From sequence record NC_048047.1: a DNA stretch of 64,000 nucleotides; one strand, given 5' to 3'. Positions within the stretch are counted from its first letter, which is position 1. Each line of letters opens with the position of its first letter. Below, in pieces: positions 3,327 to 41,095 of the stretch. Under the pieces are notes generated by a model. That model had not been told where the DNA came from. It worked only from the letters and a program-made list of their open reading frames with translations, and did no database searches. Made by a program: the position numbers and the translations under genes.

Positions 3327-3812
3327 CTAGGTAGCGATCCGATGATCGGCTGTCAACAGTTTTATCGCAGGATGTAGGTGCCAGCGCCACCAGCGACTGG
3401 CCACCACCTGGGCGGCGGCGATCGTCAGGGACGTTAATTGGAGGGCATAGAGGATGTTGATGATCATCGTGTAGCCGCGATTAGAGGTGTGCGCCTCCAG
3501 GACGGCTTTGAGGAACCAGAAGATCAGGTGGCAGACCATCTGCGCGTAGAGCGATACACAGACCATGCGGCTCCACCATGAGGGCCGGCCCATGTAGATC
3601 AGGCCAATCATGACCGCCTGGATGGCGTCGATCCAGAGGTAGATCACCAGCGAGGATGAGCCGAAATAGAAGTAGACCCGCATCAGGTTGCAGACGATCC
3701 AACTGATGCAGAACATCGTGGCGACCACCTGCATGCCAGGGCGCCACGAAAGCAACGCGACCGTCCCCGTTAGGACGGTCGCGCCGGCAAAGATAAGCCC
3801 CCAGAACCCCAT
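3327..3812 (-). CDS. Multi-pass membrane protein (about 5 TM)
   Basis: Alternating hydrophobic segments; follows the 79-aa ORF after 3 bp. Confidence 0.75.
   Translation of the reverse strand: MGFWGLIFAGATVLTGTVALLSWRPGMQVVATMFCISWIVCNLMRVYFYFGSSSLVIYLWIDAIQAVMIGLIYMGRPSWWSRMVCVSLYAQMVCHLIFWFLKAVLEAHTSNRGYTMIINILYALQLTSLTIAAAQVVASRWWRWHLHPAIKLLTADHRIAT
3351..3367 (-). promoter_or_regulatory. Class I promoter (CGATAAAACTGTTGACA)
   Basis: Repeat motif inside the 3' end of the membrane gene. Confidence 0.75.
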
Positions 3813-24165: not shown

Positions 24166-24699
24166 TTGACCGACGAGACCGAGACCGAAACCGAGCACGC
24201 CCTGTACTACGCCCTTGTCGCCGGCGCGGCCGAGTATGACGGGCTTCCGGCTGTGCTCCTGGCGGTCTGGGCCGAGAACGACAAGACCGTCACCGGCCGC
24301 GTCGTCGAGCAAATCTACACCTACAACAACAACATCACTCACGTGACCAAGCCCGACCAGAAGTTCGCCTTCATGGGCGGACGGCAGGGCACCGGCCTCT
24401 ATCGGGCCTCGAAGAACAAGCTGCTGGCCACCTTCGCCGATAAGGCGACGGCCGAGGATGCGACCTTCAAGGCCAAGACCATCGCCTCGGTCCAGGTCGA
24501 CGAATTTGGCGAGAGCGCCAAAATCAAGGACATCCTCCACCGCGCCGGCGAACTGGAGCAGCAGGCCCGGAAGCTGCGCGAGGAAGTAAGGCCGCTCCGT
24601 GCCGCCGCCTGGAAAGAACGCTTCCAGCAAGTCCTCGGGACGCTGCGCGACGCGGGCGCCTCTCATGTCTGGGCGCCGCCTGAGGACGTCACGGCATGA
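24166..24699 (+). CDS. Hypothetical protein
   Basis: TTG after AGGA. Confidence 0.75.
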   Translation: MTDETETETEHALYYALVAGAAEYDGLPAVLLAVWAENDKTVTGRVVEQIYTYNNNITHVTKPDQKFAFMGGRQGTGLYRASKNKLLATFADKATAEDATFKAKTIASVQVDEFGESAKIKDILHRAGELEQQARKLREEVRPLRAAAWKERFQQVLGTLRDAGASHVWAPPEDVTA

Positions 24700-24887
24700 C
24701 GCTCCTCGACGCCTGGATCATCGGCCTCGTGCCGTCGGTGCTGATCATCCTCTACTGGAATACCTACGAACTACGTGGGTGGAACATCCCCTACGTCATC
24801 ATCGGAGCGTTCATCGCCGGCGGCCTTTGGCCGATCTTCTGGCCCTGGCACCTGATCATGACCGCCAAGCAAGACCAAGAAAGCTGA
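24696..24887 (+). CDS. Small membrane protein
   Basis: Two TM segments; ATGA coupling. Confidence 0.7.
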   Translation: MTLLDAWIIGLVPSVLIILYWNTYELRGWNIPYVIIGAFIAGGLWPIFWPWHLIMTAKQDQES

Positions 24888-24889
24888 AC

Positions 24890-25525
24890 ATGAACCAACC
24901 CATCAAGCATCTCATCCTCCACAGCGTCGAAGACGCCGGTATCCAGGGCATGGTCCGCGCCGTGCTCGGCCCGGACTTCTCCTCGATCCTGGTTCCCGCC
25001 GAGATGATCCACGAGGAGTGGGACAACCCCGAACCCGTCGCCGTCCTGCTCCAGCCGGTCTACAACGAAGAGACCGGCCGCCTGGGCGTTGTCCTGGGCC
25101 GCCGCGCGGTCGCGCCGAAGATCGGCGAATGGGCGATCCCCGGAGGCTTCATGGAGCGTGGCGAGACGCCCGAAGAAGGTGCGGTGCGCGAGACCCAGCA
25201 GGAGTGGGGCATCGCTGGCCTCTATGGCCACACCGCGCGCATCTGGAAGGTCTATCCCTCGACGGGCGCAAAGCCGCGTCTGCTGATCTTCTGCGTCAAC
25301 GGCCACACCCTGAAGGCCTCGGAAGTTCGCGAAATCCTCGGCGCCAGCAAAGGCGACGGCGAGATGAGCGAGTTCCAGGTCTTCTACGACCCGATCGAGA
25401 CGGCCTTCCCGATCCACACCACCGTCCTGGCGAAGTTCTTCGCCGAGGCCGGCGTGGGCGCCAAGGAGTTCCCGATGAGCGGCTACGGGCTGATCGCCTC
25501 CCGCAGCCATCCCCCGCAACGCTAG
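24890..25525 (+). CDS. Nudix hydrolase
   Basis: ATG 24890; WAIPGG FMERGE TPEEGAV RETQQEWGI Nudix box (EE->QE). Confidence 0.85.
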   Translation: MNQPIKHLILHSVEDAGIQGMVRAVLGPDFSSILVPAEMIHEEWDNPEPVAVLLQPVYNEETGRLGVVLGRRAVAPKIGEWAIPGGFMERGETPEEGAVRETQQEWGIAGLYGHTARIWKVYPSTGAKPRLLIFCVNGHTLKASEVREILGASKGDGEMSEFQVFYDPIETAFPIHTTVLAKFFAEAGVGAKEFPMSGYGLIASRSHPPQR

Positions 25526-34517: not shown

Positions 34518-35155
34518 TCGGCGCGTTCGATCTCCTGCTGCGCAAGGCCGGCGCCGTGCGCTTCTCGGTCAACGAGAACCGAAGCTACTACGAAACGGCC
34601 GCGATCGACTTCCACAAGCACATGATGCTGCCGGAGGAATGGTCGAACACGATCGAGAAGGCCATGATCGAAACCCTGGGCGCCCAGAAGGACTCGCCCA
34701 TCACGACGACCAAGATTTTCCTGCGCGACGAGGTCCAGGGCAAGGAACGTTCCTTCACCGCCGGCGTCAACCCGGCGCTCGTGATCGCCAGGGCTCTTGA
34801 TCGCTGGCGTCTTGAAACCGGGAACCTCGATCCGATCACGGACTTCGCGGCCGACGAGATGTTGGAGTTGGAACAGGCGATGATCTACCTGACGGTAGAG
34901 TCCGTCTCCTGGTACATCGACGGCAACGAGCATCTGCGCGACGGCGCGTCCACATACGCCGAGATCGTCCGTGACTATCCAGGCTCTTTTCCGACCTGGG
35001 TCGGCGAGCCTGTTGCTGACGACTACACCGGCGACATCATGATCCTGACCTTCTATCCCGATACACCCATCGGCTCCTACCGAATGGCGGCTGCGACGCT
35101 GCCGGAAGTCCTACGAGCCGCCCACGCCCTGATGAGAGAATTGCGCGGACAATGA
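34514..35155 (+). CDS. Hypothetical protein
   Basis: Coupled; C-terminal FYPDTPIG phage motif. Confidence 0.75.
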   Translation: MIGAFDLLLRKAGAVRFSVNENRSYYETAAIDFHKHMMLPEEWSNTIEKAMIETLGAQKDSPITTTKIFLRDEVQGKERSFTAGVNPALVIARALDRWRLETGNLDPITDFAADEMLELEQAMIYLTVESVSWYIDGNEHLRDGASTYAEIVRDYPGSFPTWVGEPVADDYTGDIMILTFYPDTPIGSYRMAAATLPEVLRAAHALMRELRGQ

Positions 35156-36000
35156 GCCTCTTCGAAACCAAGGACGCCTTTGGCGACCGCATGAAGGCCT
35201 ACGAGAAGGTTGAGACCGGTCGCCGTTTCATGCCGGGCCTGCCGCTCTACGTCCGCCTGGACGGACGGGGCTTCTCGCGCTTCACCAAGGGCATGGCCAA
35301 ACCCTTTGATCCGCGCATGACCGAGGCGATGGCCGAGACCACCCGCACGCTGGTGGCCAAGACCCACGCCAGCCTCGGCTACTGCCAATCCGACGAGATC
35401 AGCTTGGTCTTCATGCCCAAGGACCAGATCAACGACTACTTCTTCGCCGGCAAAGTGCAGAAGATCGTCTCGGTCCTGGCTGGCCTATGCTCGACCGTTT
35501 TCTATCGCGAGTTCGAGGTTCAATGCGGCGATCATATCCCCACACGCGGCGTCGAGCATCCCGACCAGTTCCTCAGGCGCTTGCCGCACTTTGACGCCCG
35601 CGCCTTCCAGGTGCCGGTGCTCTACGAGGTCGCCAACGCGGTCCTGTGGCGTGTCAAGGACGCCGAACGCAATGCCGTGCAGATGGCGGCCCAGGCGGTC
35701 TATTCGCAGCGGGACCTGCACAAACAGCCCACCCGCAAGCTGCGCGAGATGATCGCCGAAGCTGGCGTCGACTTCGAGGCCTACCCCAGGGCGGTGCGGT
35801 CGGGCCGCTTCTACGCGCGCATCACCGAAGAACGGGCGACGCCGCCGGAAATTCTGGCCAGGATGAAGGAGAAGGATCGCGACAAGAACGCGATCATCAG
35901 CCGCAGCGAAGTCCAGGAGATCATCCCCGAAGGGCCGATCACCTACCAGACGATCGCCGACCTCTTGAAGTTCGATCCGCCCGCGACGGTGGCGCCGTGA
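35152..36000 (+). CDS. thg1: tRNA(His) guanylyltransferase / Thg1-like 3'-5' polymerase
   Basis: RMK.YE, RLDGRGFSRFT, SDEISL, KI.S, FDARAF, WR..DA.RN. Confidence 0.9.
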   Translation: MSLFETKDAFGDRMKAYEKVETGRRFMPGLPLYVRLDGRGFSRFTKGMAKPFDPRMTEAMAETTRTLVAKTHASLGYCQSDEISLVFMPKDQINDYFFAGKVQKIVSVLAGLCSTVFYREFEVQCGDHIPTRGVEHPDQFLRRLPHFDARAFQVPVLYEVANAVLWRVKDAERNAVQMAAQAVYSQRDLHKQPTRKLREMIAEAGVDFEAYPRAVRSGRFYARITEERATPPEILARMKEKDRDKNAIISRSEVQEIIPEGPITYQTIADLLKFDPPATVAP

Positions 36001-36804: not shown

Positions 36805-37406
36805 TGCCCCTATATTTTAGCACCTACAAGTTCAAAACGTCCAAATACCCAGGGCAGACAGTCGAGGCTGCGACGCAGTTCTACGCCCGCGACTACGGCC
36901 ATGCGCTCCAAACGCTGAAGATGCGGAACCTGGACGAATTCGTTTGCCGCCCGCCCTTGCCGCGACCCGGTATCGTCACAGGCGCCGAAGGTCCTCCCGA
37001 GATGCCTTCCGACATGATACAGCAAGGTCGCTTGGCCGAAGCCATGCATGCGGCGATCTATATGGGCTTCCTGGCGCACGCCTGCGAGGCCACGAAAGGC
37101 TACGATCTCTTGCATGACATCGGTGTGCTGCACGAGATCGGACATCTTCTTCTTTTCGATGCCTGGGGTAAGGCAGGGTCGCTACGCAACCCCTACGCGG
37201 CCTCCGGTCGCGACAAGGAGATCGTCGCGGAAGTCGCGGCCTTGGAGCGTCGCATCCCTGGTTTCCATCCCTCGTGGTCAGGCGTGGAGGAATATCCAGC
37301 CGTACCGTTCCCGCAGCGCCTTGCCTGGGCCAAGGACGGCATCCAGGAACCGGACTGGTATGCCAAGGACATCCCGTGGTCGGCGCCTCGGGTGATCTTC
37401 GGCTAA
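36804..37406 (+). CDS. HExxH family protein 3
   Basis: TGATG coupling; LLHDIGVLHEIGH. Confidence 0.75.
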   Translation: MPLYFSTYKFKTSKYPGQTVEAATQFYARDYGHALQTLKMRNLDEFVCRPPLPRPGIVTGAEGPPEMPSDMIQQGRLAEAMHAAIYMGFLAHACEATKGYDLLHDIGVLHEIGHLLLFDAWGKAGSLRNPYAASGRDKEIVAEVAALERRIPGFHPSWSGVEEYPAVPFPQRLAWAKDGIQEPDWYAKDIPWSAPRVIFG

Positions 37407-37408
37407 GG

Positions 37409-37428
37409 CTACAAGATAACTGTTGACA
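37409..37428 (+). promoter_or_regulatory. Class I promoter (CTACAAGATAACTGTTGACA) heading the NAD module operon
   Basis: Repeat motif, N16, CTACCC. Confidence 0.75.
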
Positions 37429-37482
37429 GGCCATGTGGCGGTCACTACCCATGACGCAACAGCTTTCACCAGGGGAGTCCAC

Positions 37483-38097
37483 GTGACCTACCAATCCACT
37501 CTGAAACCGCCGGGCTTCGTCACCGAGGAGGGCGGTTTTCGCGACTACCTCCACGTCTGGATCAAGGGTTCGCCCGAGGGCGCCTCGGGTGAACTGGCGC
37601 TGGGCGTCAGCCTGGGAAGCGACGACACGACCGAGCCGCCCAACCTGCGCGAAGCCATCGCGGTGATCGCCGCCTTCGCCAGCGGCGTGATCATGAAGCA
37701 ACCCGGCTTCGTCGGCATGACCGACGAGCAGCGCGAGCATGCCGTCCAGGGTGGGGTCTACCGGCTGCTTTCGGCCGTCATCGAGTCGGCCGCTCCGGGT
37801 TTCGGTCCGCATCCTGGCACACTGCTGCCGCCCGAGCCGATCGAGGACGAACCCGAAGCTATCCAAGCCATTGGCATCTGGGCCACACCCGGCGCCGATG
37901 GCGGCTTCTTCGCAGAGTTCATCGACGAACCGTCGACCATGCCCGTCGGCGCCATCCTGGCCGCAGCCGCGCTCGAAGCCGGTGTCGCCACTGAAGGCTC
38001 GGACGAAGACGTCTACGACACCGCCCTGGTGCGCGCTGTCCAGGCCGACTTCAACAAGACGATCGAAACCGCGCTCGTGGTCGGGACCGTCCAGTGA
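37483..38097 (+). CDS. Acidic hypothetical protein (first gene of the NAD operon)
   Basis: GTG 37483 after GGGGAG. Confidence 0.7.
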   Translation: MTYQSTLKPPGFVTEEGGFRDYLHVWIKGSPEGASGELALGVSLGSDDTTEPPNLREAIAVIAAFASGVIMKQPGFVGMTDEQREHAVQGGVYRLLSAVIESAAPGFGPHPGTLLPPEPIEDEPEAIQAIGIWATPGADGGFFAEFIDEPSTMPVGAILAAAALEAGVATEGSDEDVYDTALVRAVQADFNKTIETALVVGTVQ

Positions 38098-38783
38098 TCC
38101 ACAGCACCCTCCTTCGCGTCTGCGCGCTGGCCGTCCTGGCCAGCGCCTTCGTCTCGACGGCCCAGGCCGCAGACCTCGCCGGCTCGGTCAGCCTGACCAG
38201 CGCCTACATCTCTCGCGGCACCGACCAGAACGTCCTCAACGGCGCGGCCGTCCAAGGCTTCGTGACCTACACACGTGGCCCGTTCTATGTCAGCGCCTTC
38301 GCCTCGTCCATGAACTACGGCGAGGGCACGACCAAGGAACTCGACTTCTTCGGCGGGGTGCGCAAGAGCGTAGGCCCCTGGACGGTCGATCTCGGGTTCG
38401 CCAACATCAACTACCCCGACAACCACACGCCGCTGAACTTCGTCGAGTACGATCTGAAGGTCGACCGCGCGATCGGCAAGGGCAACGTCGGGGTCTGGCT
38501 CGGCTACACTGACGCCTACTTCAACACCTACGGCCAGGGCGTCTGGACCGAGGCCCACGCCAGCTATCCGATCACCTCGACGGTGACGATCAGCGGGGCG
38601 GTCGCCAACCAGGACCTGCCCAACAACTTCGACTACCGGACCTGGAACGTGGGCGCGACGAAAAGCTTCGCGCACGGCGTTTCGGCCGACCTGCGCTATA
38701 GCGATACCGACCGTCACGATCTGGACCCCCGCTGGCACACCTACAGCGCGCGGACCTCGCTGACCCTCACCAAGAGCTTCTAG
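38094..38783 (+). CDS. TorF/TIGR02001-like outer-membrane beta-barrel porin
   Basis: Sec signal ending AQA|A; S.Y.SRG..Q...AVQG, ELDFFGG, alternating beta pattern, C-terminal Phe. Confidence 0.75.
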   Translation: MIHSTLLRVCALAVLASAFVSTAQAADLAGSVSLTSAYISRGTDQNVLNGAAVQGFVTYTRGPFYVSAFASSMNYGEGTTKELDFFGGVRKSVGPWTVDLGFANINYPDNHTPLNFVEYDLKVDRAIGKGNVGVWLGYTDAYFNTYGQGVWTEAHASYPITSTVTISGAVANQDLPNNFDYRTWNVGATKSFAHGVSADLRYSDTDRHDLDPRWHTYSARTSLTLTKSF

Positions 38784-38792
38784 GGGGAGCCG

Positions 38793-39428
38793 ATGAGCCT
38801 GCTTGAAATCCTAGCCACTGTCGTCACCGTCGCCTGCGTCCTGCTGGCCGTCAAACGGTCGACTTGGCAGTACCCTATCGGCATCGTCGGCACGATCCTG
38901 TTCTTCTTCGTCTTCCTGGGCGCCAAGCTCTATGCGAGCGCCATGCTCCAGGTCTTCTTCACCGGCGTGCAGGTCTACGGCTGGTGGTACTGGATCAAGG
39001 GCTACAAGGGCAAGGCGCCGCCGATCACGTCCTGGTCGGCGCCCGTGACTGGGCTTGTGATCCTGGCGGGCCTAGCCCTGGGCATCACCTTGAGCGATCT
39101 GCTGTCGGCCTTCACCGACGCCAAGGTCGCCAAGGCCGACTCGATCATCTTTGGCCTTTCCATGGCCGCGCAGTTTCTGCTCGACCGCAAGAAGCTGGAA
39201 AACTGGCTGGTCTGGGCAGGCGTCAACGCCATCTCGATCTACGTCTACGGCAGCCAGGGGCTGGCCCTGACGACCGTCCTCTACACCTTCCTGTTCTTCA
39301 ATGCCTTCTACGGCTACTACGAGTGGCACAAGGCCAAGCGCGCCCAACGCATCGTCTGGGAAGCCGACGCCAAGAAGTACCCGCCGGCGCCCGTGGTCGA
39401 GACCAAGCCAGGGGACCTCATCCTTTGA
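38793..39428 (+). CDS. pnuC: Nicotinamide riboside transporter PnuC
   Basis: W.YPIG, LQVFF...YGWW.W, DS.I..LS..AQ.L..RKK.ENW..W...N, YGY..W. Confidence 0.9.
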   Translation: MSLLEILATVVTVACVLLAVKRSTWQYPIGIVGTILFFFVFLGAKLYASAMLQVFFTGVQVYGWWYWIKGYKGKAPPITSWSAPVTGLVILAGLALGITLSDLLSAFTDAKVAKADSIIFGLSMAAQFLLDRKKLENWLVWAGVNAISIYVYGSQGLALTTVLYTFLFFNAFYGYYEWHKAKRAQRIVWEADAKKYPPAPVVETKPGDLIL

Positions 39429-40465
39429 ACTACGCACAGCAAATCCTTCCCCATCCGTTCGAGGCCAAGCCCGAGAAGGGCTTCGTCCTGGGCAAGTTCA
39501 TGCCGCCGTCGGAGGGCCATCGGTTCCTCTGCGAGTTCGCGCGTGAATACTGCCAGAAGCTGACCATCCTGGTCTGCTCGATGCCCGACGAGCCGATCGA
39601 CGGCTTCTTGCGCTTCCAGTGGATGCGCGAGATGTTCCCCGACTGCAATGTCGTCTGGTGCCAGGAGGTCCTGCCCCAGGAACCGGTGGGCGAGGACCCG
39701 CAGTTCTGGGAGACCTGGGCGGGCGTCATCCAGAAGTACGGCAGCCGCTATGGCGAGCCCTACAAGCCCGACGTCGTCTTCGCCTCCGAGCCCTATGGCC
39801 ACAAGCTGGCCGCCAGCGTCGGCGCCCGGTTCGTGCCCTGCGACATCTCGCGGACGGCGCGCGACATCTCGGCCACCCGCATCCGCGCCCAGCCCCTGGC
39901 CAACTGGTCCTACATCCCCAACGTCGTGCGCCCGCACTTCGTCAAGCGGGTGACCATGTTTGGCCCCGAGAGCAGCGGCAAGTCGACCTTGGCCTGCGCC
40001 TTGGCCAAGGTCTACGACACTATCGTCGTGCCCGAGTACGGGCGCACCTACACCGAGCAATTCGGGACCGATGTTGGCGCCGAAGACCTGATCCGCATCG
40101 TCCAGGGTCACCGCGCCAGTGTCACAGCAGGCAAGCGGCAGGCCAACCGCATCCTGTTCGAGGACACCGATCCGATCATGAGCGCGGTCTGGTCCGATAT
40201 GCTGGGCGTGCCTCGTGACCCGTGGTTCGACAGCTTCGACGACAAGGCCGACCTCTACCTGCTCTGTGGCGTCGACATCCCCTGGGTGGACGACGGCACT
40301 CGCTACTTCTCGTCGGAGGCTGATCGGCAGCGCTTCTATGGGCTGTGCAAGCTGGAACTCGAACGGCGCGGCTGCGCCTATGTGGAGATCAGCGGTTCGA
40401 TGCTGGACAGACGCATCACCGCCATGACCGCAATCAACAAGACCTTCGGGATCGAAGCGCCATGA
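39425..40465 (+). CDS. nadR: NadR-type NMN adenylyltransferase / nicotinamide riboside kinase (no HTH)
   Basis: TTG 39425; GKFMPPSEGH, ISATRIR, Walker A GPESSGKS, PEYGR, FEDTD, PWVDDG.R. Confidence 0.9.
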   Translation: MNYAQQILPHPFEAKPEKGFVLGKFMPPSEGHRFLCEFAREYCQKLTILVCSMPDEPIDGFLRFQWMREMFPDCNVVWCQEVLPQEPVGEDPQFWETWAGVIQKYGSRYGEPYKPDVVFASEPYGHKLAASVGARFVPCDISRTARDISATRIRAQPLANWSYIPNVVRPHFVKRVTMFGPESSGKSTLACALAKVYDTIVVPEYGRTYTEQFGTDVGAEDLIRIVQGHRASVTAGKRQANRILFEDTDPIMSAVWSDMLGVPRDPWFDSFDDKADLYLLCGVDIPWVDDGTRYFSSEADRQRFYGLCKLELERRGCAYVEISGSMLDRRITAMTAINKTFGIEAP

Positions 40466-40854
40466 TCAACTTCACTTACCTGGGCATCCCCTACACCTCC
40501 AAGAACCCCAACCCTGTCGAGGCCGCTGCTGAGCGCGCCGCTCGCATGGTCGAGTTCTGGAAGGCCTGCGCCATGCTGATCGACCAGGGCGAAAACATCG
40601 TCTCGCCGATGACCCTGGAGCCAGCCCTGACCGTGGTTCCCGATCTGCCCTACGAATGGCCGTTCTGGCAGCACTATTCCCGGAACATGCTGGCCTTCTG
40701 CTCCAAGCTGGTCGTCCTTCAACTGGACGGCTGGGATGTCTCCACGGGCATCGCCGGCGAGGTCGAGGAGGCCCAGCGTCTTGGGCTGGAAATCCACTAT
40801 CTGGCGCCGCAGGAAGTCGAGGCGTGGAGACAGGGGCGATCCCGTGGCGGCTAA
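40462..40854 (+). CDS. DUF1937 / nucleoside 2-deoxyribosyltransferase-like fold protein
   Basis: ATG 40462; YLGIPY, IVSP, W..W, LVVLQLDGWDVSTGIAGEVEEA..LG. Confidence 0.7.
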   Translation: MINFTYLGIPYTSKNPNPVEAAAERAARMVEFWKACAMLIDQGENIVSPMTLEPALTVVPDLPYEWPFWQHYSRNMLAFCSKLVVLQLDGWDVSTGIAGEVEEAQRLGLEIHYLAPQEVEAWRQGRSRGG

Positions 40855-41095
40855 GGCTCCAAACACCAAGGCCGGCCGCGAAGCGCTGAACACGATCCGT
40901 GATCGCCTCAAGCCCCTGGGCATGGATGTCAGGTTCGAAACCGGGTCCAAGCACAACTACATCGTGGTTCGCGGACATCGTCAGCAGGACCTTTGGCGGC
41001 TCACCTTGACCCAGGGCTGCAAAAGCCACCAAGGCACCTACATCAAGGTCGCCGAAGGCTTCTGCCGCCAAGTCAAGGCCGCCATAGCGGCCTAG
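40844..41095 (+). CDS. HicA-like small basic protein
   Basis: GTG 40844; helix, then RFETGSKH-beta-hairpin pattern. Confidence 0.45.
   Translation: MAAKAPNTKAGREALNTIRDRLKPLGMDVRFETGSKHNYIVVRGHRQQDLWRLTLTQGCKSHQGTYIKVAEGFCRQVKAAIAA

Follow-up and report, generated by a model that had tools for sequence, protein, structure and literature searches.

A TorF-family barrel gene co-inherited with pnuC and nadR in Caulobacter phage CcrBL9 and its relatives: a putative operon for NAD+ precursor import and salvage

Here we describe a gene trio encoding a putative porin of the TorF family, a PnuC-family transporter and a NadR-like enzyme in the genome of Caulobacter phage CcrBL9 (NC_048047.1 / MH588546.1), a 322-kb giant (jumbo) Bertelyvirus (Dolichocephalovirinae) whose host is C. 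vibrioides CB15. Depletion of nicotinamide adenine dinucleotide (NAD+) is a common end-point of anti-phage immunity, and the phage pathways NARP1, NARP2 and NARP3 are a current topic of research. The analysis was centred on a 64,000-nucleotide stretch (hereafter the window) corresponding to positions 186001-250000 of the CcrBL9 record; positions given below are those of the window unless they are stated to be record positions. Over bases 37400-40900, the sequence matches the CcrBL9 record with 100% identity. The trio lies on the plus strand and comprises the porin gene (38094..38783; 229 amino acids (aa)), pnuC (38793..39428; 211 aa) and nadR (39425..40465; 346 aa, TTG start), followed by a gene for a DUF1937 protein (40462..40854; 130 aa).

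The original prediction for this locus had proposed four closely packed genes, encoding a signal-peptide beta-barrel with a C-terminal Phe, PnuC, a NadR lacking the helix-turn-helix (HTH) domain, and a DUF1937-like protein. All four open reading frames (ORFs) were recovered at the positions given above, and family matches show the four identities to be correct. The tight packing was likewise borne out, with the difference that the run comprises six genes, from gp341 to gp346. The porin gene overlaps gp341 by 4 bp (GTGA) and is coupled translationally to it; a gap of 9 bp separates it from pnuC; pnuC and nadR overlap by 4 bp (TTGA), as do nadR and the DUF1937 gene (ATGA); and gp346, which closes the packed run, overlaps the end of the DUF1937 gene by 11 bp. 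The depositors named the four genes 'putative exported protein', 'ribosyl nicotinamide transporter, PnuC-like', 'ribosylnicotinamide kinase' and 'hypothetical protein', and RefSeq names the last 'nucleoside 2-deoxyribosyltransferase'. PnuC, NadR and, in RefSeq, the fourth gene were therefore already named publicly, while the porin appears in public records only as an exported or hypothetical protein.

The product of the first gene of the trio matches the Pfam family Gcw_chp (PF09694; E=2.5e-19, 70.6 bits against a threshold of 24) and the NCBIfam model TIGR02001, 'TorF family putative porin' (101.7 bits against a cut-off of 47.15). At E<=0.01 the only Pfam matches were Gcw_chp and a sub-threshold Porin_4, with none to KdgM. 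Its N-terminus, MIHSTLLRVCALAVLASAFVSTAQA followed by AD, reads as a signal peptide with cleavage between AQA and AD, and the chain ends in ...TKSF, the final residue (F229) being near-invariant across the phage clade described below. Modelling with AlphaFold2 from 19 sequences of the clade gave a confident structure (mean predicted local distance difference test score (pLDDT) 88.3, predicted template modelling score (pTM) 0.78), in which a signal helix precedes 12 long beta strands as assigned by DSSP. When this model was compared with the PDB using Foldseek, the best superposition was on KdgM (4fqe; template modelling (TM) score 0.62/0.81, root-mean-square deviation 3.4 Å), other top superpositions were on NanC (2wjr) and VhGalP (8xua), then OmpG and FapF, and the 50 matches listed (down to E ~3e-5) were all outer-membrane barrels, mostly porins. 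At the level of fold, the predicted structure supports a small, monomer-sized outer-membrane channel. Within Bertelyvirus, ratios of nonsynonymous to synonymous substitution rates (dN/dS) were 0.20-0.37 for the porin, 0.12-0.30 for NadR and 0.35-0.39 for PnuC; judged from these ratios, the porin is under purifying selection similar to that on NadR and is better conserved than PnuC.

The second gene encodes a PnuC by all family models applied (PF04973, E=5.5e-48; TIGR01528 equivalog, 96 bits against a cut-off of 42.45; phrog_1880), and its product can be aligned with Neisseria mucosa PnuC (4QTN). Its nearest bacterial relatives are pnuC products of Caulobacterales and Hyphomonadaceae (43-59% identity). 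Because the gene is paired genomically with nadR, the transporter is presumably of the nicotinamide riboside (NR) type rather than of the thiamine or riboflavin Pnu subtypes.

The third gene encodes a NadR-like protein with an N-terminal nicotinamide mononucleotide (NMN) adenylyltransferase (NMNAT) domain and a C-terminal ribosylnicotinamide kinase (RNK) domain (AAA_28, E=2e-27; phrog_3462). It aligns end to end with Haemophilus influenzae NadR (1LW7, residues 4-344; E=1.9e-36) and over its full length with 8X7F and 9X6F (E=2.9e-31 for the latter). The entry 9X6F is titled 'nicotinamide-nucleotide adenylyltransferase' and is presumably Bas30_86. The HTH domain is missing, since the match to the full-length model NF005988 begins only at profile position 62. 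The score against the TIGR01526 equivalog (241.4 bits) fell under its cut-off of 341.15 bits, and by sequence the protein is best regarded as a diverged member of that family. The closest relatives of the phage enzyme are HTH-less NadR proteins of Caulobacterales and Hyphomonadaceae (52-54% identity). The Walker A (GPESSGKST), DTD and WVDDGTRYF motifs of the kinase are intact, as is ISATRIR of the adenylyltransferase. In the NMNAT motif GKFMPPSEGH, Ser stands in place of the first His of PPHxGH (39494-39511, in the region of residues 24-29). The same position is Ser in one metagenomic relative (L011), Thr in phages CcrSC and C1 and in two contigs (L006, L012), and Gln in another (L004), while the His was invariant in the six bacterial NadR proteins aligned. 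Variants of the form (H/T)xxH are active in NMNATs, in which Thr is normal, and the Ser variant is plausibly compatible with function.

Homologues of the porin were compared across loci and contigs labelled L002-L126. A protein search returned 18 close homologues, then a large gap to ordinary bacterial TorF proteins, and in a maximum-likelihood tree the 18 phage-type porins form one clade (support 100/100), joined to TorF of Caulobacter, Brevundimonas, Phenylobacterium and Asticcacaulis by a branch of 0.32 + 0.82 substitutions per site. With Caulobacter, Brevundimonas and Phenylobacterium TorF the phage porins share the hidden Markov model family and a length of ~230 aa; they differ in that identity to the bacterial proteins in the tree is only 29-36%, in the long, fully supported branch between the two groups, and in clade-wide switches at strand positions (from bacterial TorF to phage porin, for example, K to D at 120, A to K at 122, S to D at 124 and N to H at 155).

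In all 13 distinct clade members with downstream sequence (CcrBL9, CcrSC, the C1 group, L004, L005, L006, L007/8, L009, L011, L012/13, L047, L049 and L050), PnuC is the next real gene after the porin, and NadR follows PnuC wherever sequence remains. This adjacency holds at porin identities of 53-90% (L002-L009, L011-L013, L047, L049, L050), and the same order of genes is present in 11 Bertelyvirus records. The flanks vary: upstream, the porin adjoins gp341 in genomes of the Bertelyvirus type, a PncA-like isochorismatase in L005, L007, L009 and L047, and NadE in L006, L011 and L012. Some contigs have extra genes inserted between porin and PnuC, namely unrelated small ORFs, a His_Phos_1 gene or an ORF of 314 aa. 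The small ORFs (L004, L005, L006, L011, L013) were considered as a possible fourth component and set aside, as they are mutually dissimilar by eye. Among the metagenomic relatives, L004 is viral, being a 114-kb contig syntenic with CcrBL9, and L007 carries a tail-fibre gene (phrog_4209, 8e-23) that marks it as viral; L011 carries GcrA-like and NUMOD3 genes, and the remaining contigs have phage-like gene density and a putative viral origin.

Control loci gave a different picture. PnuC or NadR genes were found near none of 79 bacterial-type TorF genes (L037-L040 and L052-L126, 0.7 Mb in total, with fetched flanks of up to 6 kb), and no porin was found near any of 21 alphaproteobacterial pnuC genes (fetched flanks of up to 8 kb). 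The 21 pnuC loci were drawn from GTDB, each species being represented by a single genome in the scan, and belong mostly to Caulobacterales and Hyphomonadaceae; at most of those with downstream sequence an HTH-less nadR comes next, typically between glnD and mutS. Matches to pnuC and nadR in the pattern scan were confined to Caulobacter species other than C. vibrioides and to further Caulobacterales. Of 50,697 phage records, 346 contain a gene resembling pnuC and only 11 of these 346, all Bertelyvirus, also have the porin; Sinorhizobium phage phiM12, for example, has a plain pnuC-nadR pair. In IMG/VR, alignments of the porin and of PnuC matched nothing beyond CcrBL9 and CcrSC, a scan of GTDB genomes with the porin-clade pattern returned no match, and a scan of JGI metagenomes returned only distant bacterial TorF (<=39% identity), which served as a negative control set. 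The occurrence in 13 of 13 clade members, set against the zeros in both bacterial controls and the 11 of 346 phage records, shows that the association is specific and strong and that it is restricted to one phage lineage. The synteny of porin, pnuC and nadR, which the original prediction had proposed to check, is strongly borne out within a single phage clade.

In the diverged relatives (L005, L006, L007/L008, L009, L011, L012/L013 and L047), the trio is embedded in a larger NAD cluster of apparently viral origin that includes NadM-Nudix, a PncB-like NAPRTase, a PncA-like isochorismatase and NadE, the last in one or two copies. A Macro-domain gene (L007, L009) and a cytoplasmic phosphatase of the His_Phos_1 family (L007/L008) also occur in these clusters. 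By gene content, the cluster is apparently a near-complete Preiss-Handler set combined with NR salvage. The PncB, PncA and NadE types of these relatives had no match in the CcrBL9 regions searched, nor in any Caulobacter phage of the collection. At the end of an NAD cluster (NadE, PncB, MutT, NMNAT and a hydrolase) in the jumbo Sinorhizobium phage Phosso lies a gene annotated as 'nucleoside deoxyribosyltransferase' (L042:13710-14162), and genes of this fold may on that account recur near phage NAD genes.

These patterns bear on whether the barrel belongs functionally with its neighbours at all. It could be an unrelated membrane 'moron' that became linked to pnuC-nadR and serves superinfection exclusion, envelope remodelling or the entry of a different solute. 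TorF/Gcw_chp is a family without an assigned function, bacterial relatives of the porin lie in unrelated gene contexts, blocks of phage genes can be co-inherited without any functional link, and the porin is missing from most PnuC-NadR phages, all of which would fit such an origin. Against this, adjacency persists down to 53% porin identity despite reshuffled flanks and inserted small ORFs, the diverged contigs place the porin amid closely packed NAD-salvage genes, with PncA or NadE on one side and PnuC on the other, and none of the 13 clade members lies outside an NAD context. We therefore regard a moron as unlikely.

The reading that we prefer, and toward which we lean with modest confidence, is that the barrel is the outer-membrane entry step for a pyridine precursor. 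The operon as a whole would then be a phage system for NAD+ precursor import and salvage with a NARP3 pair at its core. PnuC would carry NR over the inner membrane, and the HTH-less NadR would phosphorylate NR to NMN and adenylate NMN to NAD+. In one lineage of alphaproteobacterial phages this pair appears to have gained a co-inherited third part, namely a 12-stranded barrel that would be an ancient derivative of a Caulobacterales-type TorF porin. The barrel would be exported by means of its signal peptide and inserted by means of its C-terminal Phe signal, and would most likely offer NR (or NMN or NAD+, which would need periplasmic trimming) a path through the outer membrane of Caulobacter, which is without channels of the OmpF/C or Tsx type. 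The outcome would be an import route across two membranes. C. crescentus is without genes for OmpF/C-type general porins and Tsx/LamB-type specific porins and uses 67 TonB-dependent receptors (PMC4659666). A host without general porins provides a rationale for a porin carried by the phage.

With regard to the substrate, NR is the simplest candidate, because the operon encodes no periplasmic trimming enzyme. A parity-based rough count gave a net acidic set of putative lumen-facing strand residues, and an acidic interior would suit cationic NR; the lumen-side acidic residues E82, D84, D99, E118, E153 and D199 are, however, common to phage porin and bacterial TorF, and the feature is therefore not diagnostic. 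The channel might instead pass NMN or NAD+ released from neighbouring lysed cells, with periplasmic nucleotidases of the host making NR for PnuC. This arrangement would resemble that of H. influenzae, where a porin is followed by NadN and e(P4), PnuC and NadR (PMC4081464), and the closest folds, KdgM and NanC, do carry acidic solutes. A further point in its favour comes from a gammaproteobacterial locus: in a Halieaceae metagenome-assembled genome (L030:1990-3177), a calcineurin-like (Metallophos) phosphoesterase with a signal-peptide-like N-terminus stands divergently beside a bacterial pnuC-nadR pair and is, by sequence, a candidate periplasmic enzyme for trimming NMN or NAD. Neither the phage operon nor its relatives, on the other hand, encode a periplasmic nucleotidase or phosphatase, and the net acidic lumen would favour cationic NR over anionic NAD+; we consider passage of the nucleotides improbable. 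The His_Phos_1 protein encoded between porin and PnuC in L007/L008 was examined as a periplasmic NMN phosphatase and ruled out, as it has no signal peptide.

It is important to note that several observations weigh against a role of the barrel in precursor entry. Such a role would require a new outer-membrane protein to be assembled early enough in infection to matter. Any supply of NMN or NAD+ would also lack a trimming step in the operon, where no nucleotidase or phosphatase domain was found and where only the porin carries a signal sequence. The lumen-charge count, crude and parity-based as it is, fails to separate the phage clade from bacterial TorF. Our literature searches on TorF with porin returned no relevant experimental characterisation of TorF/Gcw_chp proteins, and the family is not known to have one. 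Most PnuC-NadR phages do without the porin, the metagenomic relatives span a GC content of 48-64%, and the adenylyltransferase activity of CcrBL9 NadR is not certain, because the first His of its HxGH motif is replaced.

A stronger version of the proposal, in which the barrel is a dedicated, NR-adapted outer-membrane channel and porin-PnuC-NadR is the first virus-encoded system for importing a metabolite over both Gram-negative membranes, is one that we can advance only tentatively, and we would sooner doubt it than assert it.

CcrBL9 carries a second set of NAD genes outside the window. On the minus strand, 53 kb upstream of the module, lies a NARP2-type pair encoding Nampt (NAMPT_N + NAPRTase; record positions 168571-169989) and a NadM-family NMNAT/Nudix protein (170001-171089). 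Because this pair is also encoded, import in CcrBL9 would add to intracellular recycling rather than replace it. Together, the operon and the Nampt and NadM/Nudix pair could keep NAD+ up during infection, either against NAD-depleting defences or for the needs of the phage itself. Two further observations concern genes of related annotation. A Nudix gene within the window (24599-25525; PF00293, E=1.1e-12) shows weak similarity to the Nudix portion of NadM-Nudix enzymes. The annotation 'NAD synthetase' carried by a gene for 254 aa (record positions 264226-264990) is doubtful, as the product has no Pfam match.

The purpose of any additional NAD+ is a separate matter from the route by which it is made. 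The module could serve as an auxiliary metabolic set, supplying more NAD+ to the NAD-consuming reactions of a jumbo phage in an oligotrophic host, with no part in counter-defence. NAD synthesis genes are common in jumbo phages, with pnuC in 68 of 174 'NAD-jumbo phages' (PMC11662467), and CcrBL9 has two salvage routes as well as Nudix genes, both of which agree with a metabolic purpose. Homologous PnuC-NadR and Nampt-NMNAT pairs, however, neutralise Sir2-HerA and other NADase defences (PMC13464706; bioRxiv 10.1101/2024.02.11.579819), and metabolic and counter-defence roles can coexist. A purely metabolic module is thus a serious possibility, albeit one that we judge somewhat doubtful, and an anti-defence role of the operon is put forward here as a conditional part of the proposal.

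The genes flanking the trio show a narrower distribution. The gene immediately upstream, gp341 (37483..38097, plus strand), encodes an acidic protein of 204 aa without a signal peptide, and had no match in Pfam, NCBIfam or PHROG. It is restricted to Bertelyvirus-type contigs, with 25-29% identity to its counterparts in C1 and L004, and between Bertelyvirus subgroups its dN/dS is ~1, while its operon partners are constrained. Downstream of the trio, the DUF1937 protein is assigned by PF09152, a family of the nucleoside deoxyribosyltransferase-like clan (E=1.4e-12, 48.7 bits against a threshold of 23), and phrog_355. Its AlphaFold2 model (pLDDT 80.8, from a three-sequence alignment) best matches 1T1J (TM score 0.71/0.74), and next the Toll/interleukin-1 receptor (TIR) domains of Thoeris ThsB and nucleoside 2-deoxyribosyltransferases (NDTs). 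The label 'NDT-fold' attached to this protein by the original prediction holds on these fold matches; its inclusion in the module does not, as only Bertelyvirus-type genomes have the gene after NadR, and L005-L013 do not have it in that position. In phiCbK-type phages the DUF1937 gene is surrounded by hypothetical genes, neither pnuC nor nadR being present within 2.5 kb of it, and in a module-wide DNA search of phiCbK-like phages it was the sole part matched. A clean insertion of the trio beside an ancestral DUF1937 gene was considered and could not be demonstrated, phiCbK sharing only DUF1937 with the region. From this distribution, DUF1937 is best described as a neighbour of the trio rather than a conserved member. 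The run ends with gp346 (40844..41095, plus strand; 83 aa), an annotated coding sequence with 41% identity in CcrSC and no family match in NCBIfam or PHROG. DUF1937 and gp341 are probably co-transcribed neighbours of the trio in Bertelyvirus only.

The original prediction had also placed a single promoter for these genes at about 37409. A sigma-70 consensus scan detected none there, and gave neither promoter nor terminator for the operon. The intergenic region nonetheless holds a promoter-like element at 37412..37451 on the plus strand, composed of CAAGATAAC, TTGAC (-35-like), a variable spacer of 17-18 nt and CTACCCA (-10-like); downstream of it come a ribosome-binding site (GGGGAG) and the GTG at which gp341 starts. 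The blocks CAAGATAAC-nG-TTGAC and CTACC are kept in CcrBL9, CcrSC, C1 and the metagenomic contig L004, with a GGAG ribosome-binding site and a GTG start downstream, while the 17-18 nt spacer has diverged; conserved blocks around a diverged spacer constitute a phylogenetic footprint. Within the window the motif GTTGAC-N15-19-CTACC has two copies, where 0.05 would be expected by chance. Its second copy lies at 3330-3357 on the minus strand. The element appears to resemble the Caulobacter housekeeping promoter consensus (TTGACGS, 10-14 nt, GCTANAWC). The blank sigma-70 scan notwithstanding, the conserved footprint and the enriched motif are consistent with the view that the element acts as a promoter.

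Two other features of the genome were noted in passing. A few genes upstream of the module, at 35152-36000, the window encodes a Thg1-like tRNA-His guanylyltransferase (PF04446, E=6.3e-30), which is kept in CcrSC, C1 and L004. A TerD/tellurite-resistance-like cluster with a membrane protein lies at record positions 177130-180689 of CcrBL9.

The significance of the proposed outer-membrane step follows from the precursor on which NARP3 draws. Since NARP3 needs an external precursor, the permeability of the outer membrane should limit it, and we found no paper on the outer-membrane step of this pathway. If the proposal is true, phages have solved the outer-membrane barrier with a channel of their own that is strictly co-inherited. 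This would give a handle on a large, uncharacterised family of proteobacterial outer-membrane proteins, as well as a rare case of a virulent phage remodelling outer-membrane transport. In the stronger version, NARP3-type counter-defence would also be explained in hosts such as Caulobacter that are without general porins, and any TorF/Gcw_chp protein would have its first substrate assignment. In practical terms, the compact three-gene cassette could be of value for NR uptake in porin-poor bacteria.

Comparison with known systems delimits what is new. The predicted barrel shares with the bacterial channels KdgM and NanC a 12-stranded, monomer-sized fold; these channels are encoded alongside the uptake system for their own substrate. 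They differ from the phage porin in that their substrates are acidic sugars and in that the phage porin falls outside the KdgM sequence family. NARP2 and the KVP40-type NadV + NatV pair have in common with the operon the aim of phage-driven NAD+ reconstitution, and a similar pair is encoded in CcrBL9, but NARP2 uses intracellular nicotinamide and involves neither a transport step nor membrane proteins. The closest parallel in two-membrane logic is the V-factor route of H. influenzae, in which NAD+, NMN and NR enter via porins, NadN and e(P4) trim the nucleotides to NR, and PnuC and NadR complete the path (PMC4081464). Both systems would run from an outer-membrane channel (OmpP2 in Haemophilus) through PnuC to a bifunctional NadR. 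The Haemophilus channel, however, is a general porin that is neither linked to pnuC/nadR nor homologous to TorF, the route is cellular and not viral, and the periplasmic NadN and e(P4) that it requires have no counterpart in the phage operon.

The nearest relative of the operon is NARP3 itself. Operons of phage PnuC and NadR were proposed in 2024 as a likely third route of NAD+ reconstitution (bioRxiv 10.1101/2024.02.11.579819), and NARP3 was then characterised as a two-gene pathway of Enterobacteriaceae phages in which the PnuC Bas30_87 imports NR and the HTH-less NadR Bas30_86 converts it to NMN and NAD+, restoring NAD+ depleted by Sir2-HerA; crystal structures were also solved (Yan et al., Sci Adv, August 2026; PMC13464706). 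The suggestion that the CcrBL9 genes represent a different route to NAD+ consequently falls away, as PnuC-NadR had been hypothesised in 2024 and characterised as NARP3 in 2026 (PMC13464706). The suggestion that the porin link had not been described fares better: the words 'porin', 'outer membrane', 'Caulobacter' and 'TorF' do not occur in the text of PMC13464706, and literature searches on phage-encoded porins, on TorF with porin and on PnuC with porin returned nothing relevant beyond Haemophilus. As far as the literature was searched, the porin link thus appears to be new, and the combination of PnuC with an HTH-less NadR is known.

General porins are plentiful in the enterobacterial hosts of NARP3 phages. 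As a pair encoded by lytic phages, NARP3 consists of a PnuC-family transporter gene adjoining a gene for an HTH-less NMNAT + RNK NadR, and both features are found in CcrBL9; activity assays concern Bas30_86/87 only, and the CcrBL9 pair is likened to them from its genes. The CcrBL9 operon differs in the Ser that replaces the first His of the NMNAT motif, in its alphaproteobacterial host without general porins and in the added gene for a putative outer-membrane barrel, and we classify the locus as a variant of NARP3 with three components.

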